DNA of 64,000 bases, from assembly GCF_023055435.1 (NCBI RefSeq), contig NW_025963791.1, positions 16,430,001 through 16,494,000 of the forward strand, in the 5' to 3' direction. Made by a program: the position numbers and the translations under genes. Below, in pieces: positions 131 through 58,451 of the stretch. Source of the DNA: Haliotis rufescens (taxonomy: Eukaryota). Positions within the stretch are counted from its first letter, which is position 1, and the number at the start of each line of letters is the position of its first letter. The notes under the pieces are model-generated. The model saw only the letters and a list, made by a program, of their open reading frames with translations, did not search any database and was not told where the DNA came from.

Positions 131-3100
131 CTGGCATTGTATTAGAATCGTTGTCACTTTTTTCCGAATGTCATCCTTGTTCTATAAATGTAGGAACAAG
201 CAAAATATATGGAGGGTAACCAAGAAATATGTTGAAAAATGGTAATATTGTTGGATTTTTTATGGTCCATTCATATAATTTTCATTACTTCTTTGTTTTT
301 TTTACTACCAATGGAGTCCTTTTCGGCAAATTATCAAGACTGATATATTTACTTCTTCCATGTTGCTGCTGCTACAGCTGCATCTACATCAACGTCTACA
401 TCTACATCTACATCTACATCTATATCTACATCTACTTTACATATAAGCTTCAGATATTTGAGATACATTTTTGTCAATCAGTGAGAATCAATAACATTTA
501 TATCCATACCTTGCTCTCCTTGACAGTTGACACAAGTATTTTCTTCATCTTGTCCTCGGGGCACTATGAACATATACGTGTAAAATCATACAGCTGAAGT
601 TGTCGCGAACATCTGGTATCATCACTATTTGATAGTGATTCATAAACGCATGCTCAAAATTAGGGCTGGAACGAGTCCACATTTACTACACGGGTACCCA
701 CACCCCTATTACCCGACACTACCCGGGTACCCGCTGTTGATGTTAAGAGATAGGTACAAAATGTCCGATTGGGAATAGTTTGCCAGTAGCCCTGGCAAAG
801 TGTATTTCGATACACGTATAAAACGATGTGGTCATGCATACACTGAAGTTGGCTGACGTTTTATCTTCGTTCAAACATATGTAAGTCAGAAGGAATGCCT
901 TCATAGTCATGAAGAAAAGCGAACATTAGAGACTTAAAGTTGTTGTGTAACCATGTAGTTATTTAGTGATTTTTTGTCATGAAACAATGTATCACGCGAC
1001 TAACCACGGGTCCGGGTAGTCCAGTGGGGAACCGGGTCCTACTCAGTACCCACCCGACTCGAGTACCCGAGTTACCCGTCCCAGCCCTACTCAAGATACG
1101 GTCAGAAACGTACATTCGGCTCTGGAAAGGGTTTTGTCGCTTATATTTAATTCAAAGTTTTCACAATGTGGAGGACATTTCTAAATTTGAAGCAACAGTG
1201 ACAAAAATGATGACCAATACAATTCCCTATTTCGGCATATATATTATCTGTTCCCTTGTTATTCAGGTGAACAATTGAGTTGCCTTTGCATGTGTTTGAG
1301 ACAGCTGCAACAGGTGGAGCAGGATCCCGTAACACCTGGTATCATTATTTGACAGTGATTCATAAACACATGCTTATGATATAGTCGTGATCGTATACTG
1401 GACTCTGTCTCTCCTATGATTATGGAAAGCATTTTGTCGCTTCTAATCTGGTTTGAATTTTTTGTGTTTACATACAAAAAAGGGATCAATATTTCTAAAA
1501 GTAGCATGCCTTTAAACCGAGTAAAGTGGTTGATTTGCATTATAATTTTCCATAATTGCTGCGTACTATTTGCAAAACATATTCTTGAAAGAGTAGTTTG
1601 TCTCGGAAAATTAAGCAGGGAAATGATACTTTTCAACAAACCAAACGCTATTTCAGTTTTGTTGAATGTTTGAAAGAACAATACTAAATGCACTTTCTTA
1701 CCACAAACTGTGTAAATGGTAAACGTCTTGCTTTTCACTGATCTACTTGTTGAATGAAGTATCGGATGAGCAACATAAACGGCACATCTCTTGACTGGAT
1801 GTTGTTTTTTGAATATACCCAATGGCGTACGAACTTTGTGTTATACCATTTGTCATTACCTTCAGTATTTCGATGCCACTCTTCTTTTTAGATTCTTCCA
1901 AAATCTGAAATGACAAGTGCAGCGGTCAGTTCTTCATCTTCAGTGTGTAGTGTCTGACACTCACAAAGATATCAAATGACATGCACGTTACGAGTATGTG
2001 TAACGTAGTCTCTCGGGAAAGCGTCACATTAACGAGAATGAACATATATAAGTTTTAAGTACGCATTGATAAATCTCGGATGAAACCATGTGTTTTCTTC
2101 TATGAAATACTGATTATTGCTTCAACTCTATAGCAAGAATAAGCGTCTTGCCTGTGTCAACTGTGTGCCAGGGCCTTGATGCAACCGGTTGGGCATGATA
2201 TTGTGATCTTTGTCTGAACACCTAGTGTCATCAAATCCAGATTTGTGTCTCCCGTTTACTTTTCATTTACAGAAACACAACTATATGGTTCCCATTAGGT
2301 TAGTCGTTGTAGTTAAATGAATATTTGAAACTCAGCTATATGATGTGCACACGACTTCACTACTTCACAATTAAGTGACTGAAATACACTGATTCTATTA
2401 TAAAGGTGAACAACACTGTCACTGTAAATAGACATGTAATTGGTAATAGTGGAGGTACAGACAAACATTATGACGGCTTTATCTGATATCAATGGTTAAA
2501 ATGTTCTTAACAAGTCCTTTTCTTACCTCTCGAAGTCTTTCCAGTAGTCCATATAGCCTATTGAAGATTCTCTTTCTCTGTAACAATCAGGATAATGGAT
2601 ATGAAGGCTTTTAAAACAATCGAGGTACGTACATATCTATGTAAGCACATTCATATCTATATACATTGTATGTACATGGAGGTATAACTATTTACCTTCC
2701 TGTCAGTGTTTATATGTACATCATGAATGGAACACATACCTCAAAATCCTTAAGGATGTAATCAAGGAAGAGTTTCTGTTCTAGCTCCCTCTGAAAGATC
2801 ACATGGAGTAGGATCAGCAATTTTAGGACATTACAGGTTCAATATATCTTTCCTGGTAGTCAGTATGGGCGGGATGTCCTCAAGAAACCCACGATTGTCG
2901 AAAGATTTGGAGAAGGGGTGGTAATAACCAATATTGCGCCTTTACAGGCTGACGTTACGATGTAGTTTGGATATTCACTCACGCTCCCACTCAGTTGATA
3001 TTAACTTAGTGCGGACCTGTTATTCATTTCATGTTCAAATTTCTAAATGCACAACGAAGACTTAACATACAATACGGTTCTATTATGAGCCGATAGACAA

Positions 3101-6100
3101 AATATTTGGTTCGCTATTTAAATGTCATTATTTTTCTAAACGATATATAACCTTTGTTTCCTTAAATGTTTTCCCGACAATCTTTTGAAGATCTCCACGG
3201 GTCTGAAACGTAAATATCATGAATTCAATTTATTTTAATTAATATACGAGTCTGGAAATACTATTACAGCAGGTATTAATATTAAAATGATATATAAGTT
3301 ATTGAAAACATGTATCATTCAAAACTGGCTTAAATGAAATTGTACCATAATGCTTTACAAATACTTTTCAATCAAATTACATCACTTATCTCCCTGCTAG
3401 TGTAGCTCTATAATTTACAAACAGCCTGGTATTGCAGTTTACGAACAGAAAAGTTGGAAGAATGATTTTGGATAAATACATTCACACCCTTCCAAGATCA
3501 AACATATACTGACTCGCTGAAAAAAGTAAAACACTCTTCGTCAAGCCTGGGGTATTTGTAACTTTTGTCATCTCGTCTTGAAATGTGTGATTTCGGATGA
3601 CATTCGGGTGAGCGTCTGTACATAACTGTCATTTGTGAGACTCATGCAAAAATGAAGTCAATTTCAGATTTTCTGAACTTTCATATTTCAAACCTCGATA
3701 TATTGGTCGACAAGGCAGATGTCCTCCAGATCTACAAGGCCATAGTCCAAAATGAACTCAACGCATTCTGTCTTTTCATGAACTAATGCTTCCCCGAGTA
3801 TCTTCTGAATAAGGTCATCTGAGTCTGCAGCTGAATGTAAATGTTACAACAAAACATATGTAATTGTGTAAAATGTAAGATTGATTGTGATAAACAGGAA
3901 CATTTCTCGGGGCAAACCTTAAAATGCTTAGACTAACCAGATTCGCTCTATTCCCGTTCCTAAGTAGTTTGAATACATTTGGTCGTATGAAAACTGGGTC
4001 ATGTAAGATGTTTGTATTAGGCTATGCTTCAATCCTGATCGACTATATATATTGGCCTCACTTTTTGTATGGCGTTAACAAATGAATATTCACAGCTCGC
4101 TAATGATATAGCTAACAATAATGAATGTATTTTGCCAATTGCATAGCAGACTCTTTAAAATCACATGTCTGATAAAACAAATCGATGAATCAGCAAATCA
4201 ACACTTACCATCCGAATTATCTGACGATCTCTTCTTTGCTTCCGCATATTTTGCGAATTTTTCGTCAGTATTCCGACTGAAGACAGGGGATGGGAGGTAC
4301 TCGTCCACAAGGGAAATCAAATCCGTATCCGATTTACCTGAAATATTAGTAAGCTATTGCCTTCAATGGAATTCTTAGTTTACAAATTGTGTATATAAAT
4401 GAAACGTTTCAACTGCAAGTATCAAATGCATTTTTCTATGGTGAGGTGCTTCATTTAGAGAATCTTCGGACCATGTGATTCGTTCCGATTATGAACCTGG
4501 ACCTGTCAATTACGATTACGACACCCAATTTAGACACTCACTCCAGGGAGGACTTTCAGCTACAATATTTTAAAGCAAACAATTAGTCACTTTTCGATGC
4601 ATACTTTTGACAACTGCAGATAGTATTCCTCTAAGGAAATCCATATCTTTGTTGAGGTCAACGACAGTGATGAGGTCCCGTCTTTGAAGACACTGAATGA
4701 TATCTTGAACTTGTTCGTCAGTTGATTCTGATTTGAATGTTCGACCAAGATCCGTTTTTATTTTCTTCTTTATTCTTTCATCAATCACCGTTCCTTGACT
4801 GAAAAAGGAAACTTTAATTGCATACATACATACATGTATACCATGGGATATGGGACACTGAATATTTTAGGAGTACATGGCACATGTACATATTATTGTA
4901 CCCAACTGACTGGTACTCAGTGTGTTCACTGACACAACATCGGATATTGCCCTCACTGCATGATTTGGATAGAATGTTAACCGCAAGTATTTGTTGCTTT
5001 ATTTCAATTCCATCATAGTAAAAATTGGTCGGTCTCTTAGATTACAGCTACAGTCCTACATTTATAAACACATTTCACCACACCAATTGTGTGTCTATAA
5101 AACATGTAACTGTATAGATACCCTTCATTCTTGATTCTTTCAATTTTGTTGTGGGACACAGCTTTGGATTCTTCATAGGCAGAAGATAACACATCAGCCA
5201 TTCCACCTGTGTTCTAGAAGAAAGTGATTGTTATATGACTATATCATGTTATCAGGCATAAAATCCCAAAAGAGAAACATATATTTGTGTATTCTGTAAC
5301 AACGTTACAATGGCATTGATGCAACAAATATAGACGAGCAACGTTAATTACATTAAAGTTATAAAACGGTTCTTTTTCATATTTCTTACATTTAGCTCTG
5401 AAGATACTGAACTTTTTAGACAGTAGATCACACTGATTCGTCCAATAGAGTATCAGATATGCCTTAATATGTATTACGATAAAAGGTCGTTGATTACGAT
5501 ATCGACTATTTTCTGTATTAAACGCAAACAAAAACAAATTTTAAAAGGAATAGCATATATCCATGAAAATAATGAATACATCATGACAGTGTCAACACCT
5601 ATCCTCTGTAAACGTAATCTCAGGCTGAAAGTAGCGTGCGGTAAATTGTCAGTTCACAAGTAAGTTTTGGATATGATCACCATCACACAAGCTTGCCAAC
5701 GACGCCTCACTGACGACACAATATGGCTGAGGAGGCCAGGGGGATGTTATTCAAGATAAGGACCAAGGCCTGACGTTGCTGGACCAACGTCATCGGTTTG
5801 TTTGGAAGTCGGCGTAAACGACGTTCCATTTCACCCAACACATACACGATGGGCGACAGATCTGGCGAAACAGCAGGTCAAGGGAGTATGTGAGTGACGT
5901 CCATGCGTCTGAAGGAAAGGGAGAATATAAGGACGGACAGTTTCGTCACTGTACCGTACACCTGTCCAATTGCAATAGATACCCAATAGACGAGTCCTGC
6001 TATGTGTAGTGATGCCTCCTGATATCATTACCCTCCCACAACCGACTGCAGAACGTTGAAAACAAATGCGTCATCGTAAGTTCAATCCGACGTTGGTTAA

Positions 6101-13274: not shown

Positions 13275-13408
13275 NNNNNNNNNNNNNNNNNNNNNNNNNN
13301 NNNNNNNNNNNNNNNNNNNNNNNNNNNNNNNNNNNNNNNNNNNNNNNNNNNNNNNNNNNNNNNNNNNNNNNNNNNNNNNNNNNNNNNNNNNNNNNNNNNN
13401 NNNNNNNN
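13275..13408. other. Assembly gap (N-run)
   Basis: Ns in the sequence. Confidence 1.
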
Positions 13409-22553: not shown

Positions 22554-23362
22554 CCATAAACATAGGTAGTTACACCATCATTATCAATCCATCTCTTTGT
22601 ATGTAAGGGGGATAATGGTGTCTTGTTCATTCTTAATCCATATATCCTATGATTGTAACTTCTTAAAGAGTTCATCTCGTGTTTGAACGTTCTACCGTTG
22701 AATAATGATACTTTATACTGTTCGTCTTGATATGCTTTTTTACAACATACTTCTTAACACCCTTATCTTTTCTTATTTCTCCATTATCGGACTTCTTTAT
22801 AGAATACATCTTAGGTCTTAATCCGACATACTCGGCTATAGGGGTCCCAGCACATTCATCCTTCATCTTACCTAACACCTTTTTATTTACAACGCTGTGC
22901 AGTGGATTATCTTTAGGGTAATCGCTCGTGTCGTACATATCTATTTTTTCTGCCATATCTTTATACACATCCTCGGTTTGTATTTCCATCAACAAAGAAT
23001 CTGTGTCGGTATATAAAACCTCGCATCTATCACCGTATTGCTTCTTAAGTTCGTTGTAATAAAAGTCATACATTAAGTGTTTTGACAAGTCGAGAATACT
23101 CATACCGACGTACACCGGTCTGTTGAATTTTATATTACTCTTCTGCATATGTAGTGCAGCTAAGTCGTTATCGAATATCTTGCTTCTGTTAAAAGCCGGA
23201 CTGGCTATAAGTTTCCTGAGTCTTTCTTCCTCATTAGATCTGACTAATTTAACATCAACACGCTTCCTTAGATTCTCCATAGTTTTACCAAATACTGAGT
23301 TATTCATGAGCTTAAACAGGTTCTTTTCGAAATCGCTGGTAGCTATCTTTCTTAAATCTAGT
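22478..23362 (-). pseudogene. Polinton/adintovirus protein-primed family-B DNA polymerase, C-terminal fragment with frameshift
   Basis: FEKNLFKLMNNSVFGKTMEN (motif B), YTDTDS (motif C), NKKVLGKMKDE, GLRPKMYS, KGVKK. A 1-nt frameshift near 22725 leads into HEQYK..MNSLRSYNH..KTPLSPLHTKRWI..YGY. The 5' part is missing. Confidence 0.9.
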
Positions 23363-23712
23363 TGTGTTGTTTGTCCAGCAACAGAAAAAATTACATGAAT
23401 TTGTTTTTCACAATATAACATAATATAATCACAAGGTGGGACAAGCGGTCCAAAAGCTATGCCATTGTATTCAATTCATGCCTTAAGATATTGCTGACAC
23501 GTGATCTCACTGTGGACGGACCGTGGTGTAGGGGATTGCTGCCGTGGTGTAGTAGAGAGAACCTTTGTCCACAGATTTAAAGGTCGGTGGTTCCATCCCT
23601 GTGCTCCGTCATACCAAGAAGACGTTACTAATCGTAGTTGTGTTACCCTTAAAGGGGTTAAAACAAGGATTGGCCATATCCACACTGTAGAAACCAGAAC
23701 TACAAACCAGAC

Positions 23713-29507: not shown

Positions 29508-32500
29508 TCAATCCTTTGACTGCTCAGTTTGCATGTAGAATTCTGCGTTCGCTCTCTCGAATACATCTAGTGAATCTTCAAGTTGTTGCTCCCCTTCGGC
29601 GAATATATCATCATTGGATTCAATCTCACAATCAGCAGAAAGGTACTGATATGGGTCTTCGTAACCACTGACTGCGTTGTTAGATTTGACAGTTCCACCC
29701 CCATCTGCAAAATGAATATACTGTGCAGCTTATCAATATTAGAATATATTTAAATACCATATACTAGTATTATTCACATTTCAATGTACATCTAGCTGTA
29801 CCCATTGCAGCGGACATAATATTTACGCACACCATTGTGGGATTTGCACAACACATTCTCAGGTCAGCCATATCCATGTGATTAAGGATATATGTCTGCG
29901 TCAAGCTGATCAGGTAAGACTCTTATGTGGAGTAATGGCAGACAATGCTTCATTATTTTGACAAGTATATTTTTAATATAGCTACGTATCTCAAATTAAC
30001 ATCTCGTAGGCAAGACAGCTTCCAAAACATATTATATAACGGTGGACCTATGATTATTAGTAGTTATGATCTAATTACCTTCATATGGATCACCATAACC
30101 CTCTTCATCATATGAAAATAAAGAAAAGTATTTAGATTCATAACACGATTGCTCATCACGATATGGCTGAAATATTGCCGATGTGACGTAAAGCATTAAC
30201 TCACTCACTCATAACACGATTGGTTATTACAATAAAACCATTTATTGCATTTTATGAGTCTCTGAAATAAATGAAAAGGTTCAATGTTTCAGCAGACATC
30301 GAACGTATTTACTATTGGGCCGTTAAACCGTTAACATATACGCGTTGATGCAGAACGTTTCCTATCCAAAAACGAGATCAGTAAAATTGCTGGGAATAGT
30401 TTCGTACCTGGATCTTCTTCTATTTCATCCCAGATGTTTTCATAATAATAATATTCTGGAAGAGAAAGCGTATTAATTGCCATTACAAAACACTGACTAC
30501 CATGTCCAAAGTACATGGAAATAAAGAAAATAAAAGAATCTGTATTTAACCATGAACTTAATTTGAACATAGAAACCGCACAATTCCTGATATGTAATTC
30601 AGTAAGTGGAGTACAATTGAGCAAGTTTTGATTGGGTTGCGCTTTCAACTAGTACCACGTGCGAGTCTCATCAGGTCACAACTGATGAATGGACATGAAG
30701 TTGTAACGTATAGTTACTTGATATCATGACAATTGGGGAATACCATGATGTCACAACACCAAGGTGACAATGGACAAATAACTTACGCCTTTACATTTAA
30801 CTTCGGCGCAATTCATGATTGAAATGTTGCTCATTTTGAAACAATGTAGGTTCATCATGAAAATAACTATACGTTACAACTTCATGTCTGTTAATCATTT
30901 ATGGCCTGATGAGACTCGTATGTGGTACGAGTTGAAAGCCCTTTGTAAGGTAGCTTCATGTTTGAGCATATCCTTAATAACCATTTTTTAAACTGAGAGT
31001 ATGCACTTCTACCTTCTGTGATATTCATTGCAACAGAGCTCTAAGATCTTTTACCCTATCAAGTATCCGTCTCTTAAATGATTGTAAATTTCTGAAATGT
31101 TTTCGTCGCTCTGTTTGTCATGTGATTATATGTTTAAAATCTGTAAGCACTTGTACATATGTACAAAGAATTCCTTTGCGGCCGGTGATAAAGTTTTGTC
31201 ATTGTCATGGTCATTACGTACCGTGACTTTCGCCATCGTGTGTATCTTCACCTTATGAAAGGAAATATATATATTTCATATCAATATGTTAAAGAAACAA
31301 AGACATTTGAAAAAATGTAAAGCATACTCAAAAACTAAACATTTGAATGTGAAAGCCAACATGACATTCATCGTAGTTTTAACAGGTACATGTAACGTGA
31401 ATCTAAACAAATGAAGTGTTGCATACTGTTATGAAGAAGATGAATGAATGGAAACTTAAACAAAGCAGTGCATGGAATTCGTGGTGCTAGACATGGTCAT
31501 GACTGATCCGTGTTATAGTCAGATGAACATACCATTCGTTATGATATGAATGTAAAAGTTCAGACTTGCACGATTTAATATGAAATAGCATGGTTCGTCT
31601 TGATTGGGAAATACATTCGAAAACATCACATTTATTAAGCTGTACTAAGACATCAATAAAATCAATATCAACAGATTCCTTGACAAATATTAAAAAAAGA
31701 ATAATTATCTGCGCATTACAAAGGTTGAGAGGAAAACGCGAATCATAACGCAAGTGAGGCATTTTCTTTAATTGCTCGCCAAATATAAGGTAAATCTTGT
31801 TCTTAAATGATTTCAAAGCTGATCACATGGATTGGAACGCTTCAGCGCATACCTTCAGCTATATACACGGGCATAAACGATTCAATTATTGTTGTTTTTA
31901 AATGAGTGTTGATTCATCCCACTTTCAACAGATTTTCAGTGACTCTCATGTTGGGTTAGATATGCCTTCACTAGGCGGCAATAATGCATTCGTTATGCAT
32001 TAAATTATTCGTTCGAAATAACTTGCACAGTGTTATGAACGTCTGTTTGAAACGCGTTCCCGTTACTAAGCGCATTTACGTAAAATAAAAGGGTTAGTGC
32101 TATAAACACCGGAGTATTGTGAAAGGGTTCAATACTCTTTCAGACGTCACATATATGATATCTATGTTTGCGCAATACTTTACATATAACGTCATGCTGC
32201 TTACCTGTTGTGTCTATATGCTGTCTAATTTCCCGAAGATTGACACTATTATCCTCCTCCAGGCCTTTTCCTGCAAAGGTAATAACATACACATAACAGA
32301 GATATTTCTAGATAACCCTGTCCGTTAGATAACCCGAACATTTAACACCTCACGCTTCGATTTTAAATTCAATTTAGCGCGGTTAAATCTGTAGGTAACC
32401 AAGCTAAACATAGAAAACACAGTGTGTTTCTCTCCATTCTACCATGACAAAACCTAGCGCAAACTCATTTACGGAAATATTGATTGACTCCAATGTTTTG

Positions 32501-38500: not shown

Positions 38501-41500
38501 GGACTTCTTTCAAATTCTTATTTAAAATTGATTAAACATTGTAAATGTACCATATACAGTAATACACATATGCTATAATGCACTGATCTAGTAACTATTC
38601 ACATTGAAAACATGCTTCTGTTCATTAGTATTCCCCAAAAAGAATGTCCAATTAGGATTATATTACTTACTCTCCAGACCCGTGAAGATCCGGGTTAGAA
38701 TTGGTCTTCAGCATTCCATGCTAGTCGTAAGAAGCGACTAACGGGAACGGGTGGCCAAGCTCGCTGACTTGGTAGATGCATGTCATCGTATGCCAATTGC
38801 GTAACTCGACGCTCATGATATCAATCACTGGATTGTCTAGTTCAGACTCGATTATTTACAGACCGCCGTCATATAGCTGAAATATTGCTGAGTTTGGCGT
38901 TAAACAACAAAGAAACAAGTGCAAAAGTGAGCGTGGCTCACTAATACCTCCGACCCGCCTAGTGTGTCAGTAGTTACAAATTAAATAGCTAGGGTAGGGT
39001 CAGGGTTTGAAAAATTCATAAAAAAATGGAAATTAATAAAAACATTTTTTTCTTTCTTTTGACTGCACCCCTCCATATGACACATTATATGTACTAAGTT
39101 TGAGATGAATCCTCTAAATAGTGTAAGAGAAATCGCGCGGACAAAGTTTTCGGACAGACAGACAGACAGACAGACAGGCAGACGGTCGGACGGAACCTTG
39201 GTATAACTATATACCCCCGACATTTTGTCGGGGGTATAAAAAAAGAAACAACCTTACTCTCCATGTTGATGTTTTCTTTGGAATATCTCCCATCCACTTT
39301 GAGTACGTGTAGTATGCCATCCCTTCACTTATGAAGATGCTGTTATTCTGTTTTTCAAAGGCAAGGGCAAGAAAATCAATGTTCCAACAATTCGTTGATA
39401 TGTTTCTTTCCACCAAATGAACAGTTTTCTCCTTGTCATCTCTGTAGCATGCAGCCAGTGTTCCGGTGGCGTGCGACCTATAGAATCTAGAACAAAAGCA
39501 TTTGTTACAACTATTGATCATCTGGTATTTTAGGAATCCTCATACGGTCGAATGTAATTATCAACTTTATGGCAGAGGTGTTCCATTCCGAGTTACATGA
39601 GTGTGAAATAAAAGCTCATTATACATGCAGTACATGGAAAGTGAAGTTTATAAATACAATGACAACATGAATATGACTTACTTGGAACTTTCTTCTCTCA
39701 GAGCTTTCTTTTTGTTATTGAAAGTCCCTTGTGCAATAGTGTCCATTATAGTTCCTGCAGCCAGTGACGCGGTCACAAGATCCTTACAAACGTAAAAACA
39801 TGTAAGATGAGAAAACTCGCGGTTCTCTAAATTTGTACTCGTTCCCGTCTATAATATTCATATAAAATGTACTATTTACTGATTTCCAAAATCTATCTTA
39901 ACTATTTTAGACAGGAATATCGCTTAAAGTATTTTTAAAAAAACCAACACGATACAATGTAGTCCACGTGGCCTTCAAAATGCAATTTTCATTACATACT
40001 CGCAAAGGATCGATGAATGTTACTCAAATGTTTCAAAGGGTATTGCATCTTGGAGATTCACATTTGTCACTTACCTTGCCCCGTTTCCAAAAGGCCAGGG
40101 CCAGAGAGTTCCTGTTTGAGAGGACTGCCCACACGAATAACCTCCGATACGCCTCCTCAACTTCCAAATCATCATCAATCTGGAAAAAACAAAACATTCA
40201 TAGTCATAAGAAATCCATTGGACGATTCTGACTTTATCATGTGATTATCACATTCAATAGTGATGATACCAGGTGTTCGTGAAAACGTGATCGGATTCTG
40301 CCCAATCAATTGCACCCATCATAAACACATGCAAAGACATTTGTTACACCGGATCATATGAGACAGAGGTAATAGGGGAATGTAATTTGTCAACGAAGTG
40401 TGATTATGAAACCAATATGTCTAAAGCATTCTACAGCAAACACTAGTACATAGAAATATGACAAAGTGAAATTCTCAGCAGGGGCAACACCTGATGTGTT
40501 TAAACTCTTACATTGTGTTTCATGTGTCCATCGTCGATGAAACAGCTGAATGGCAGGTAGGCGTATGTAATTCTTCGCATCAAAACTGCAATGGGATCGT
40601 AGAGACGTTTCTCTGTTTCTGAGGCCTGGAGAAAAACAAAAGAAAACTCTCTTGAATTACAGTGACTACCTTACATTACAAATTACTATTGTTTTCATGT
40701 GAATAAATATATATAGGCCTGTATTGTATGATGACCATGTGTTACGTCCACGCATTTTAACTAATCTTAATACGCCTGCAAATCTACTTTTAAGTGCTCA
40801 TAAACTTATGTGGAACAATAGCGTATGTCACATCTCAAGTCCCATTGATTTAGGCACTGATAGGTTCCTGATAGTTTTACGGCGATTATCACCGTGTCGT
40901 GTAATGTGTAATCGAAGCCTTTCCACGCCTTTGACGGGATCTCCTGTAAGAAATATAACGAGAAAGTGAAAGCACATGAGTCATGCAGAGCATGAGTTTT
41001 CTATTCAGTCTTAGATCTATTGTGTATTTGTCACTCAACGTGATGACCATAGATATAACAGCTTTGTCCCAGTCTTTTAGAGGTTTGCCAATAGAAAATT
41101 AAAGCAAATATCATCTGAAGTTTACTGAGAAAACAATATGTGAAATGCCGGACTTCCTCATTGATAACATATGTTAAATTTGGAGATATGACCTTTAGAA
41201 GTATGCATCCCCCTGGGCACCAATTGTGGTTCCCTCGTTGCTGATCTATAATTTGGCCAAGGAGTTTAGCTTCACCAATCAGATATACATGTAGTTTAAT
41301 AATGGTCAAACAGTCCCTTTCACTAATCAACACACAAGAGCTAGAAGTAGAATAAACGAGTGAAATATTTAGCTCTATGTCAAAAGATTCAGTGTGACAA
41401 AACACCCTTCACCAGATTGTATGACAAGAGAGATTACTTCAGCTTTCCAATAGTCAACTTTTCGTTTATGTCCAGTAATATTCCAGCAGCTCTAGCCTGT

Positions 41501-44500
41501 AGTGTCACAACTTTTGAGGTACATTCAATCATGTTTCTTCTACGTCATATGCTTCATTCTCAAAAAGTTGTTTGATCAGTTTTAAAACTTTCAAGGCCTC
41601 GATATACCTTCCAATATGTTTAATAGTAGACATTTGGATGTCTGATACAGTTCCCTAATTTGACTTGTACCATACGTTTAGTTCCCGTGTTTTTCAGGTG
41701 AACAATTTACTTGCCTTTGCATGTGTTTGTTACGATGCCATCGGTGGCCCATTGTACGCTCACCTTTTGGTGAACACCTGGTATGAAAACTATTTGATAG
41801 TGATTCATAAATATTTGCTTAATGGGGCACGGATGGCCCAGTCGTCTAAAGGCGCCGCTGTTCGCTGTGTAGAGATATGTCTTTTGGGCAGGCCAGAAAT
41901 ATATGGTCGTTTGTTCGAATCCTGGTTCGCCCGAAATATGTTTCTAGGTTTTTCAGCACCATGTCCATGCTCATGAGTATAATCAAAGTGGTAAATGTCT
42001 GAGACCTGCATCATTTGGGGCTTTCCTCCCACATGAAGCTGACACGTCGTGATATTACTGGAATATTGTTCATTTCACTCACTAAATGTTCTGCTGATGG
42101 TAGGAATCGTACAATGGACTCTGCTATTAGCAGAGTTTTCTTATGATAATGGAAATGGCTTATCACTTTAATTTGTATTAGTTTTATTGCAGTAATGCTG
42201 ATTTTGGGCGTGTAAATCGTATGTGTTTCGTAGGATGTGATCCCTACCTGTGTTGATGTCTCTAACTCTGTTGCCTCTTCATGACCACTTTCCTGTAAAA
42301 TGAACATTTTGCTTGTTAATAGAAATGCTTTGCGCGAAATTGGCATTACGTTGGTTGGTTTGTTGTTTAACGCCGCACTCAGCAATATGGCATTAAGTAT
42401 TGAATATAACTGCATGCACCTTAAACGCCACTAAGTAGTTGTAGATTTGTAATGTGTCTTAAACAATGTAACATCTTTGGTCTTTAAATCCAAATAATAT
42501 TTAAAAATCACATTTAACTCATTAGTATATCATTATCGTTACATTTGATCAACGCTTTCATTTCCATATTCGAAAAAAAATTACACACCTCATTTACAAA
42601 GCGAAATGCCTTCGACAGCTCAGTCTGGGCCTGAAATAAGGATATATCTGTCTAGAAACGTCAAATATTCTGCAGGTCATGTGGTTTTACTCAATATGTA
42701 AAATATATTTATTAGCACAAAGCTCATGAATGAGATAATATGAAACATAAACAATTACACCAAACTATTGTATGGTACTTATCCAATATGTAAATGCGTT
42801 TTATATTTCCAGTGTTTCCAACAACTTCATAATAACATCGCTTTGCAAATGACATTTCCGATATATAACATGTCTTAAGAATTACTTTCTATCATCATCG
42901 GTTTAATGATGCCTCTAAGTCGCGCGTCTCACTTTGAATACTCTCAAATTATTTCCTAGATGTTGATGGTTGTAATTTGTGTCTGAGGCCATCTGTATAG
43001 AGATCTTGACGTTCACGCAAGAGTTGTTCTTTCAATAGGGCAGGGCATGCTTACACATGTACCTGTTTCATAAACACCTACGGGCATCATTTCTGAATTT
43101 TAATATGATTTTATAATGAATTTGTTGCACTACCTAATGGATGAGTGAGTTGGGTTTAACGTCACTTTCAACGGTATTTCTGTTATGACACCGCATGTCA
43201 GGTTAATGTGGGAGAAAAGCGCGAAGTGATGCAGGTCTCAGACGTTTACCATTTTGGTGCAATGGGTATGGTGCTGACAAATCTAGTGAGTTAGTTGATT
43301 TAACGCCGCTTTTAACTGTATTCCAGTTATATCACGGTGTGTGGACGGAAAGCCCGAAGTGATTCAGGTTTCAGACGTTTACCACTTCGGTGAATCCCAC
43401 GAGCACGGGTATGGTGCTGACAAACCTAGAAACATAATCGGGGTGAACCGGGATTCGAACACACGATCATAGGTTTCTGGCGTGCCAAAGACCCGCAACT
43501 CGACACAGAGAATCGCGGCGCCTTAGTCGACAGGGCCACCCGTGCCCCCTGCACTAATTAATTAGACAGACATTCAAGGTATTAATAGATACCCATATGG
43601 GTTGAGTGAGTGAGTATGGTTTTACGCCGCTTTTAGCAATATTCCAGCAATATCACGGCAGGAGACACCAGAAATGGGCTTCACACATTGTACCCATGTC
43701 GGGAATCGAACCCGGGTTTTCGGCGTGACGAGCGAACGCTTTAACCACTAGGCTACCCGACAGCCCCATTACACATATGGAAATGGACAATGGAAATACT
43801 ACTATATTTTAGCCCGGTGTAAAGGGACTTGTCTGCTAGTTCCTAAGGTCCTGGGACACTGGTTTCAGGGATACATTGTTCTAACCGGAAATCCAGGCCT
43901 GGTATACATGCGACGAGGACAATAAGTACTGGAGGCATGATCTGTCCTTTTACAACAGCCAAAGTGTCTGATTAGGGAACACAATCCGTGCAATATTTAC
44001 ATAATGATGAGATATATTAGTGTATCTCATGTTCAGGATGTACGGGATTTCCCGCAGCATCCCCGTGGTCTAGAGGTATCGTGAAGACGATTAAGGGGTC
44101 CAGAGAATTGACGGTAAGTTATAAGGTGAAACTTTTGAGTTCGAATACCACAAGTGTGAAAATGAAAAGAACGTACACATTTGATTTGACTATAATACGT
44201 ACTGAATGTTTCATGATTTCATGTTTTATAAAATATGTCTTGCTTTTTCTGTAGTTTAAAGGTCGTAAAGAGCGATATTCACGCAAACTGTATTTCTTTG
44301 CGGATGTAACTACTTGTATATAGATACAAGGGTGGAGAGGCAAGGTTTACAATAATTGGCCACCTATTTTACCCATGCCACTGACCCGCAATATCAGAGA
44401 AAAGCGGCTCATATTACTTGGGAAAAGTATATCCATAATATTGTGTGTATGCCAATGTTTTACATGTGTATGCAATTGTTTATTTGTTCATCAATTCATA

Positions 44501-47500
44501 CATATGAAGAATTGTTTTGTGACACACTTATTGTTTTATCTGTTGATTGAGCATGGTGCTTTTTAGATTCCACATCGATGACAGAAAAATCCCAATTACA
44601 ACGAGATACTAGTATATGGAGAAAAACAAAAGATTTTGGAATTAGAATTATTATTTTTTCTCTGGATACTCCAATATCTTACCATGTTTTCATCATATAC
44701 AGAGTGATTATCAGTAATAATCCATGAATGTAATTATACTCATAAAATTTACATTGTATACTGTAGAACATACCAAACTGAAGATAATAAATTACCTGAC
44801 ATTCTTTTAGGATCTTGGTAATCTTACTGGTTACTTGGGCCTTGGTCTGCAATAAGAAGAGGTTGACTTTGTGAATCGCAATATCATGTTATGTCCAATA
44901 AATAAATCAAATGAATGGCTTAGCCCAACCGTCATTTGAAGCCATTTTGAAAAAAATAACAGGATAACCGTCCGTGATTAGGCTGAGGGTCGTAAGAGTA
45001 ATGCGACCCTATTTAATCGATTCAGCACTTACCTGGTTCAACATTTTGTCAAATTAATTGAAATCAGATGATAATACTAACGCGTTGTTGATACCTACCG
45101 AGGAATCTTTGACAATGTCAACAACGGTCTTCTTCATGTCTTCATCTGGCAGCTGAAACATATCCTCACACATGTATACATACTTTTCACAAAAGTATTC
45201 ACATTATAAAACGCAATAAGTAGATGCTGTTGGCGCTTTCATTTATACTGCCTAAGAAAGTCATAACCCCAAAATTATATTTTCAGTCTCTACATTGTCT
45301 CGCCCTCCCTCTTTTCAACATGTATGCAAATTATTTGTAATTCACAAGAAAACTATGCATAATTGTGAATACTGTGTATGCATAATAAATTCAAACATGT
45401 TCTGGAATATATGTACATTATTTGAACCAAATTTTCCTTATTTATTACCGGTAGTTTACATCAATCACACACATACCTGGAATATCCGAAGTTTGTTTAG
45501 TCTTTTGATGTCCATTGTCTACAACAACAAAATCAGGTACTGCAATAATGTCTATTGAAACTCTTCACTTCATGATACAGATTTCTTATAGAAGAGCTTT
45601 GAAAAGCCATTCAGGTCTAAAGATGAAAACAATAATTCAAAACAGCATGCTTAATATATAAAAAATCAACGATGGCTTCATACAGTGTTTCTTGGGAAAA
45701 GTACTGTAGAGTAGAAACTGTATAATTTAATGAAAAAATGTATTGTGGTTTACTCTTAAGATTAAATGGGATCTCTTTGGTTACATACAAACTTCAGGCA
45801 GTGGAGAAATCCGTAAAATCTCTTGAGGACCCCCTTTCTCTGAAAAATGGCATTGTTGGTGATAATATGAACATGACATGACGACGATGAATAATTGTAC
45901 ACACTCATAAAGAGTAAACAAGCCACATAGAAAACCCTCAAGAAGGATCATACGTCAGAATGCTACATAAGTGTATTGGTTGGTATTGCCTAAGCCTTTA
46001 AAATGGATCTTAAATGTACATAAAATCACATCAAGACAACAATGCTTTGTGTTTATTAAAATATAATGTCACGTGAATAGTAGGTTTGGCAATTAAACTT
46101 CCACCAAGACATATTATATACATACCTCCCAACCTTTAAAGATGTACTCAACAATCAGTCTGAGTTCCATGTCATCCTAAACAGTAGAAAGAAATGCAGT
46201 GTATTTCCATTCTCTAATATCTGCTTGAAAATTAAATTGATAAGTCCTTTAGATCAGTACTAACACATTTAGATGGTACGTTTATGACAGAAATTGCTTG
46301 CTTTTGTTTGAGTGAGTGAGTGAGTGAGTGAGTGAGTGAGTGAGTATGGTTTTACGCCGCTTTTAGCAATATTCCAGCAATATCACGGCGGGGGACACCC
46401 GAAATGGGCTTCACACATTGTACCCATGTCGGGAATCGAACCCGGGTCTTCGGCGTGACGAGCAAACGCTTTAACCACTTTACCACTAGTTTTGTTTGAT
46501 GACAGATACATTTAACTGAATGCTGTAAGAACACACATAGAAACGTTACCTTGGTTTCTGTGAACATCCGAGCAACATTATTTGGAAGATCTGCAATTGT
46601 CTGAAAGATTCATAGAAATAGTCATTACAGCTAGCTATTGTGTGTGTTACACAGGGTACTGCTATATAAGTCATTCTTGTTATCTTCGCCTAGGCTAGTG
46701 ATATTACTTACATTATAAACATATAGCGCGTGTTATTAAATGAAAAGTGAGTTGAATATTCTACCTTGGAGTACAGTGCAATGAGGTCGACACTCGTAAT
46801 GTCAACAAGGCCATAATCAAGCAGGAACTCCACACACTCGGTCTTTTCGTGAACCATGGCTTCCACAAGGATTTCTTGGACAGTCTCAAAATCTGAGAAG
46901 AAAATAGATTAATAGTCTTTTTTGTCCATGTTGTTCTCAATAGGTAAGACCAATGTCGATATATCAGGACGTCAATGGGGCTAAATGCTTCACTGATAAA
47001 GTCTTTATTTGGAAATCTACGATCTGGTTTTAAAGAAGATATCAGAAGATTGTTTGTTGGAAAAGTTTTTGCAAAATTCAAGTTCTTGAGAAAACATAAG
47101 CAGACCCATACAGAGACCAGAAATAAAAATACAAAATCTTAAAACATCCCCATTTACAAAGGGGTGCTTAAATATAGCCCATAACATATTTCTTATGTAC
47201 AGTTTGCAATATTTAGTTCAGAGGAAATGAAAGTTTATGTTTCCAATACGTCAATCTTAACGTAAGACAACCTGTGACATTTTGGTGCATTCTTGTCTTT
47301 GAGTCGACAAATTTCTCAATTTTGTCCTTCGTGTGGCGGTTGTAGACAGGCGAAGGAAGGTATTCATCAACTAAGGCGATAAGGTCTTCGTTTGACTTGC
47401 CTGCAATCAAAGACTTTCTTTAACTTCATTTCAGAATAGTTAGTTGTTACTAGTCTATAAGACAAAATGGCACAACAGATTTGTAACATGGCACTTTTAT

Positions 47501-54270: not shown

Positions 54271-54769
54271 CTGAAACGAGTTATTAATACATGTATGTTG
54301 AATATGTGGTAGATGTCAGTTTCGGGGCCTATGACATAGCATGTGTCTTCATGATGAAACCACAAGATGACCACAGGAGGACGTCATGAACTATCAATAA
54401 CGAGTGTGTCTAGATATGGCACCATCTCAGAAAATCGGATTGTAGATGGATAACATGCCACTAATTAGAGTTTTATCTGAGTTCAACATATACAACAGAC
54501 TACCTACAATGAATTACTTTCTCATTTGTCGTCATTGTGTAGGTAGATGAGTGAATGTTAGTCGGCTGTGTCAACTGTCTAACATAAAGTTGAAAACGAT
54601 TGATTGCAATGACTGCACATGTATATCTGAAAACTAAAACCAACATACTTGAAATATAACCTGTCCTTACCACGTTTGGGGGCGTCTTGAGACGAGTCTG
54701 CACCCTCTGGATCAGACATAGCGGCCATCAGTACCTTAACATTGATGTTATTAATAGAATGATATTGAG

Positions 54770-58285: not shown

Positions 58286-58451
58286 NNNNNNNNNNNNNNN
58301 NNNNNNNNNNNNNNNNNNNNNNNNNNNNNNNNNNNNNNNNNNNNNNNNNNNNNNNNNNNNNNNNNNNNNNNNNNNNNNNNNNNNNNNNNNNNNNNNNNNN
58401 NNNNNNNNNNNNNNNNNNNNNNNNNNNNNNNNNNNNNNNNNNNNNNNNNNN
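58286..58451. other. Assembly gap (N-run)
   Basis: Ns in the sequence. Confidence 1.

Follow-up and report, generated by a model that had tools for sequence, protein, structure and literature searches.

The 64,000-nucleotide stretch of the Haliotis rufescens genome analysed here (the window, G000:C13:16430001-16494000) contains one gene for a TRPM-like channel, gene A, and the 5' half of a neighbouring paralogue, gene B. Exact spliced mapping of protein P0001 onto the window places gene A on the minus strand between positions 54728 and 29511. None of the 38 coding exons is disrupted; all have open frames and GT-AG splice sites. P0001 is RefSeq entry XP_048248277.1, named 'uncharacterized protein LOC124152055 [Haliotis rufescens]' and 1389 aa in length; it was matched at 99% identity by phmmer with one transmembrane exon of gene A. 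Three Pfam domains were identified in it, LSDAT_euk (SLOG, PF18139) at residues 156–384 (E-value of 2.3e-20; 73.6 bits, the cutoff being 25.7), the TRPM2-like (MHR3/4) domain PF25508 at residues 739–850 (69 bits), and the six-transmembrane ion-transport domain PF00520 (Ion_trans) at residues 942–1218 (70 bits). This combination corresponds to the Pfam definition of a TRPM-type channel, which gene A is therefore predicted to encode. The matches of P0001 in the PDB are to TRPM2, 4, 5, 8, 3 and 7, all of which are only distant kin, with a best E-value of 5e-67 and an alignment broken into three separate stretches. The named TRPM subfamilies are alpha, beta, beta-like, gamma and TRPS (PMC13143021, PMC7306681). 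In a quick maximum-likelihood tree, which contained no labelled gamma, beta-like or TRPS references, gene A, gene B and two further paralogues (C1 and C2) grouped with divergent unnamed sequences, outside the lamprey TRPM2/TRPM5/TRPM3-like group. A 2026 survey of H. discus hannai placed six TRPM-like proteins in a separate clade and gave no exon analysis (PMC12980990), and no exon array of the type reported below is described in a 2026 study on the evolution of TRPMs (PMC13143021).

Between two conserved blocks, the gene A coding sequence is divided into nine micro-exons of 42–54 nt, all of phase 0-0 (E1–E9), followed by a longer exon of the same phase (E10; Table 1). The last conserved exon upstream of the array is exon 13, whose sequence ends in ...EFLLDYGLVDITSVDLIALYSK and after which a phase-0 intron begins; the position of that intron is common to genes A, B, C1 and C2 and to the canonical TRPM genes of the H. 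rufescens genome. The 12 successive introns that run from the exon 13/14 boundary through the exon 24/25 boundary are all of phase 0, compared with 8 of 25 in the rest of the gene. The splice sites of the array are unremarkable, with AG acceptors rich in pyrimidines and with GT donors. E1–E6 occur once in the genome and are not derived from transposable elements. The initial annotation of this DNA had listed eight GT-AG exons of 51, 51, 51, 42, 54, 51, 42 and 45 nt, all of phase 0-0 and encoding 129 aa, and RefSeq agrees with each of them: XP_048248277.1 reproduces every micro-exon boundary, residue for residue. The micro-exons are real, conserved and already annotated. However, the array does not stop at position 42248 as had been thought, since a ninth micro-exon (E9) follows, and the 114-nt E10 also lies upstream of the next conserved block.

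Table 1 Exons of the gene A linker region and of the corresponding array in gene B (window positions unless a genome position is given).
Feature	Position	Strand	Description	Basis
Gene A exon 13	46765..46892	-	128 nt	exact spliced map of P0001
E1 (exon 14)	46550..46600	-	51 nt, phase 0-0; ancestral micro-exon	exact spliced map
E2 (exon 15)	46126..46176	-	51 nt, phase 0-0	exact spliced map
E3 (exon 16)	45789..45839	-	51 nt, phase 0-0	exact spliced map
E4 (exon 17)	45477..45518	-	42 nt, phase 0-0	exact spliced map
E5 (exon 18)	45099..45152	-	54 nt, phase 0-0; E1-like, also like canonical 'helix 1' profile	
E6 (exon 19)	44796..44846	-	51 nt, phase 0-0; weakly E1-like	exact spliced map
E7 (exon 20)	42589..42630	-	42 nt, phase 0-0; fast-evolving	exact spliced map
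E8 (exon 21)	42248..42292	-	45 nt, phase 0-0; acidic	exact spliced map
E9 (exon 22)	40893..40943	-	51 nt, phase 0-0; ninth micro-exon	exact spliced map
E10 (exon 23)	40512..40625	-	114 nt, phase 0-0; ancestral; upstream of ...LFVWAVLSNR block	exact spliced map
Gene A exon 24	40075..40179	-	105 nt; next conserved block; Pfam TRPM2-like match begins here	
Gene B E1'-E6'	131..3202	-	3152-3202, 2740-2790, 2527-2577, 1860-1904, 510-563, 131-181	exact spliced map, P0085
Gene B E7'-E10'	G000:C13:16427051-16429752	-	past window start	exact spliced map, P0085; window and adjoining 10 kb

Gene A belongs to a cluster of four TRPM-like paralogues at G000:C13:16423000-16632000, in which the minus strand carries B, A and C1 and the plus strand an inverted C2; their RefSeq accessions are consecutive (XP_048248272-80). 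Gene B (XP_048248272-76, 'TRPM7-like') has the same array in the same order and phase, with E1'–E9' of 51, 51, 51, 45, 54, 51, 54, 48 and 81 nt followed by an exon of 111 nt, and its counterpart of E2–E9 encodes 145 aa. The other two genes were located by whole-genome search, C1 at 16498311-16542431 (minus strand, XP_048248279.1) and C2 at 16587711-16631869 (plus strand, P0090). Both fall in the same clade as gene A (support of 100) and share its E1 and E10 exons and their phases, E10 being 90 nt in each. Between these exons, however, they contain only two small symmetric phase-0 exons, of 63 and 51 nt in C1 and of 15 and 48 nt in C2, whose 38 or 21 residues are unrelated in sequence to E2–E9. 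C1 and C2 are 92% identical to one another, the 51-nt exon of C1 having been lost from C2 by genomic deletion and the 63-nt exon rearranged. The deletion site lies in a C2 intron at G000:C13:16616174-16616251 (L010:674-751), and the C2 model uses instead a 15-nt exon located 3.5 kb upstream (16612360-16612374). A C-type protein of H. asinina (P0089) retains E2-like and E3-like units that H. rufescens C1 and C2 do not have. The interval between E1 and E10 gains and loses exons at the DNA level.

The flanks of this interval can be recognized in canonical TRPM channels, which share with gene A the SLOG/LSDAT_euk, TRPM2-like and ion-transport domains as well as both conserved anchors of the linker. 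The intron that follows '...LY(S/N)x' and those surrounding E1 and E10 occur in canonical TRPM genes of H. rufescens as in gene A, intron positions having been compared within this one genome. In one of them (the P0029 orthologue, contig C223), the exon ending in '...LYNR|gt' is followed by an E1-equivalent of ~ 60 nt and then by the E10-equivalent, with nothing between; an alpha-type TRPM gene on another contig (labelled C1, as is the paralogue) also has an intron at the first of these positions. The exon at the E1 position is 51 nt long in B, C1 and C2. Because this exon occurs at the same position in B, C1, C2 and the canonical gene, E1 is not part of the insert, in which it had originally been included; the boundaries of the insert shift by one exon at each end. 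E1, E10 and their introns are ancestral, and the lineage-specific part is E2–E9, the eight extra exons of 42–54 nt by which the gene A linker differs from the canonical one. An equation of E1–E3 with the usual helices of TRPMs (helix 1, ICF helix and helix 3 of TRPM3) was also considered and set aside; canonical exon peptides from H. rufescens, bearing the conserved leucine-rich helix, gave no significant gapped alignment to genes A, B and C for either E2 or E10, and the equation, like the matches to that helix made by eye, is kept as a lead only. The intron after the '...FCQLYNR' exon of a canonical TRPM gene contains ~ 82 tandem copies of an 83-bp unit with 92% matches (L015:785-7449, G000:C223:62872285-62878949); in genes A and B, the array starts at the corresponding intron position. 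Each unit comprises the last ~ 63 nt of the exon, the GT donor and ~ 20 nt of intron, giving ~ 82 decoy donor sites.

The size of the insert was estimated by phmmer of P0001 against the solved structures, in which both flanks align to TRPM channels and the segment between them is dropped. The gene A segment spans 184 aa when compared with nvTRPM2 (query 558–742, against 79 aa at nvTRPM2 499–578) and 183 aa when compared with TRPM4 (query 557–740, against 82 aa at TRPM4 472–554). The linkers of canonical TRPMs with known structures (nvTRPM2, 6CO7; TRPM4, 9YVP and 6BQV; TRPM5; TRPM2) are ~ 100 residues shorter than that of gene A. The earlier statement that this MHR4 segment is normally much shorter is therefore borne out, and no canonical TRPM with an equally long segment was found in these comparisons. 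Exons E2–E9 lengthen a normally short cytoplasmic loop by about 100–130 residues. We consider it probable, although far from certain, that the array represents a lineage-specific expansion of the variable TRPM linker by E2–E9, which are constitutively included and form an extra peripheral extension.

The distribution of the array supports such an expansion. In the tree, gene A is sister to the B genes of four Haliotis species (support of 97) and C is sister to A and B together (100); for B and C, orthologues are annotated in three further Haliotis species, among them H. rubra and H. asinina. It follows that the array predates the splits between Haliotis species and has been kept open in both copies. 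The retention of the array in B, exon for exon, together with the old A/B split, identifies the exons as maintained coding sequence. Genes A and B are 49% identical overall, and E2–E9 diverge faster than the rest of the protein, both between A and B (33% against 52% identity) and between the two B orthologues from H. rufescens and H. rubra (68% against 81%). E2 of A is 35% identical to E2 of B, whose own E2 is 82–94% conserved among Haliotis species, and E4 is poorly conserved between the two genes (13% identity). Among the B orthologues, E2 and E5 are well conserved and E7–E9 are the most variable. Word-indexed protein searches found no relatives outside Haliotis, a result that may reflect search sensitivity. 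The short form of the linker is present in every outgroup examined (cnidarian, vertebrate, echinoderm, bivalve, other gastropods and both canonical Haliotis genes). With no extra exons in the canonical gene, two in C1/C2 and eight in A/B, an evolutionary series is visible within one genome.

The same series could be read in the opposite direction, with the long segment ancestral and lost by deletion from other TRPMs. Exon losses do occur, as indicated by the E2-like and E3-like units of P0089 that are missing from H. rufescens C1 and C2 and by the deletion of the 51-nt exon from C2. However, the short form of all the outgroups, and of the sister lineage represented by P0057, makes an ancestral long segment highly improbable.

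A second alternative concerns gene A itself, which may be a decaying duplicate whose array exons entered the model only through homology to B and not through expression. It is represented by a single model and carries an 'uncharacterized' name. Several observations weigh against the expansion as set out above, and some of them bear on this alternative. Gene A has no annotated orthologue in the protein database for three other Haliotis species and lies on a long branch, the longest of its clade in the quick tree, and for these reasons it may be decaying or poorly expressed. The inclusion of the micro-exons in gene A comes from a Gnomon model. The homology of E1 and E10 to canonical exons is drawn from exon position only, and in gapped alignment the canonical exon peptides show no significant match to E2 or E10. 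Finally, the amphipathic signal described below is weak in B, where one of the nine exons displays it. Nonetheless, decay of gene A appears quite unlikely, given the integrity of all 38 exons with their frames and splice sites and the separation of A from B before the species radiation; that the gene is still open after this time argues for selection.

The mutual similarity of the exons was assessed by the best ungapped BLOSUM62 scores between all pairs of exon peptides, relative to 500 composition-preserving shuffles. The initial annotation had proposed a shared hydrophobic register and an origin by tandem exon duplication. Support for both is weak and comes from the likeness of E1, E5 and E6 (p of about 0.03), which score highest with one another. 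In gene B the best pair is E1–E5, with a score of 27 (p of 0.03), and between E5 of A and E4 of B the score is 28. When a small profile was built from the canonical 'helix 1' block, its best match was E5, both in A (p of 0.002) and in three B proteins (p of 0.02–0.03), whereas short-block profiles in hmmsearch gave nothing usable. No mutual similarity was seen among E2, E3, E4 and E7–E9 in the pairwise scores, and the test over all pairs is marginal: in gene A the p value is 0.07 for the mean of the top five pairs and 0.05 for the overall mean, and in gene B the overall mean has a p value of 0.49. Duplication of an E1-type exon is thus a reasonable source for E5 and E6, as far as these peptide scores can indicate. 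Extending the same process to the whole array, so that every exon would descend from one founding 'one-helix' exon, E1, through serial tandem duplication, would account for the similar sizes (42–54 nt) and identical phase of the exons as well as for the E1/E5/E6 motif and the helix 1 ranking. However, the identical phase of adjacent exons of like length is forced by the phase-0 intron in which they lie and is not independent evidence, the mean pairwise similarity does not exceed that of the shuffles in either gene, and a comparison of the A and B arrays at the DNA level revealed no remaining trace of duplication. Moreover, Lys/Glu-rich amphipathic helices readily converge in sequence. Serial duplication of one founder is therefore an unlikely origin for the array as a whole, and the preferred description is an origin only partly by duplication of an E1-type exon, which may have yielded E5 and E6.

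The exons of the array are symmetric, and the earlier observation that each of them can be skipped without a frameshift holds, as all are of phase 0-0. It had further been proposed that they are spliced combinatorially, each cell including its own subset so that the channel acquires a variable cytoplasmic sensor or interaction surface. Nine exons and their flanks in a single phase, such that any skip remains in frame, and a region that tolerates exon gain and loss between paralogues would both suit a cassette of this kind. However, any exon that lies within a phase-0 intron must be of phase 0-0, so the symmetry is forced by location and is not evidence of skipping. The annotated protein forms were compared, eight in number: one of A, three of H. 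rufescens B, two of H. rubra B and two of C2, four of the five B forms being isoforms. In this annotation none of the eight forms skips a micro-exon. The three isoforms of H. rufescens B differ at residue 305 and at residues 1364–65, the two of H. rubra B are distinguished by one lysine at the E8|E9 junction, and the second C2 isoform is truncated at its N terminus; the B isoforms thus differ by one or two codons. The H. rufescens E9 acceptor, tag|AAG, is a NAGNAG site. The NAGNAG pair at E8|E9 suggests that transcripts cross the E8–E9 junction in H. rubra B. Regulated exons are often accompanied by conserved intronic elements, yet a DNA comparison of A and B found no such elements near the exons, the only sequences in common being short interspersed nuclear elements (SINEs) and one flanking exon. 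The splice sites are, as noted, ordinary. The combinatorial proposal thus finds no support within the annotation, and we regard such a cassette as very unlikely.

Micro-exon genes (MEGs) encode small secreted proteins, almost wholly by micro-exons, and vary their products by exon skipping. The MEGs of Schistosoma resemble the gene A array in having short symmetric exons one after another, with long introns between them (bioRxiv 10.1101/2023.06.21.545858). Unlike a MEG, however, the array forms one loop of a 1389-aa channel and shows no skipping in the annotation; it accounts for nine of the 38 exons of gene A, the others being of mixed phases and 24–348 nt in length. If the nine micro-exons were an alternatively spliced set after all, sensory tissues might contain many versions of the channel differing in a cytoplasmic helical module, and the set would be an ion-channel counterpart of micro-exon-gene variation; the chance of this is slight. 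Precedent for variation in the region exists among vertebrates, in which the N-terminal cytoplasmic region of TRPM channels is alternatively spliced (PMC5943913, PMC7027284). TRPM2-deltaN lacks aa 538–557 (PMC5943913), and the ICF region, L518–Y527, is missing from some variants of TRPM3 (PMC7027284). In both cases in-frame variation alters channel function, and the placement of these sites in the homologous linker is a reading of alignments only. However, each vertebrate event is a single one and uses alternative sites within ordinary exons, not a micro-exon array. The gene A array does not represent a novel type of system.

Composition gives a mixed picture of the structure that the segment may adopt, including the proposed module of one helix per exon. 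By crude measures, the array exons contain few glycines or prolines and have a helix propensity of >=1 throughout. The helical hydrophobic moment exceeds that of shuffles (p < about 0.05) for five of the nine exons in A and one of the nine in B, so that the amphipathic helix originally assigned to the repeated unit is upheld for about half of the gene A exons and hardly at all in the paralogue. E2–E6 are partly amphipathic, and E8 and E9 are acidic. The AlphaFold2 model of the shorter C2 isoform (P0091; mean predicted local distance difference test score, pLDDT, of 60) predicts helices with confidence as far as residue 341 and again from residue 427 onwards, and from E1 through to the E10 equivalent (residues 342–426) the pLDDT falls below 50. 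This low-confidence stretch fits a peripheral, poorly constrained region. The sole outcome of an Atlas feature search with residues 550–733 was a 0.85 match to clusters of TRPM2-like type, at best a lead.

Taken together, these results lead us to propose the following course for the expansion. All TRPMs possess a variable cytoplasmic linker between the last MHR3-type helices and the conserved '...LFxWAVLxNR' helices. In H. rufescens this linker is already split by phase-0 introns, which leave an ancestral E1 micro-exon and an E10 exon. Gene A and its neighbour B belong to a Haliotis-specific clade of divergent TRPM-like channels, and eight short exons (E2–E9) would have accumulated in the ancestor common to these two genes, within the phase-0 intron that separated E1 from E10. 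The 129–145 added residues, with few glycines and prolines, are partly amphipathic in E2–E6 and acidic and fast-evolving in E7–E9. With the exons constitutively included, they may form a peripheral extension, helical in part and disordered in part, to the MHR3/4 layer in the cytoplasm, and this extension would most likely be a regulatory or docking surface specific to the lineage. If this proposal holds, the locus would be a clean natural example of a conserved channel loop that grows by accretion of short symmetric exons in a phase-0 intron, with the intermediate states preserved in neighbouring paralogues. It would also identify a natural insertion site in MHR3/4 that tolerates more than 100 extra residues, which is relevant to TRPM structure and function, and would provide abalone sensory biology with two candidate lineage-specific channels.

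Several other features of the window were recorded. A 267-aa open frame without a Pfam match lies on the minus strand between genes A and B (22675-23475); a Pfam scan of three intergenic open reading frames gave no match. Two runs of N are present, at 13275-13408 and 58286-58451. The C-terminal tail of gene A contains a second run of short symmetric exons, exons 34–37 (30079-32270), which are 66, 30, 48 and 24 nt in length and all of phase 1-1. A very young SINE, preceded by a (GAGT)n run, lies in the intron between E1 and E2 (46316-46479), with further occurrences at about 43600-43760 and 43285-43549; elements related to it make up all the DNA that the introns of A and B have in common, and more than 40 copies elsewhere in the genome were scored at 96–99% identity.

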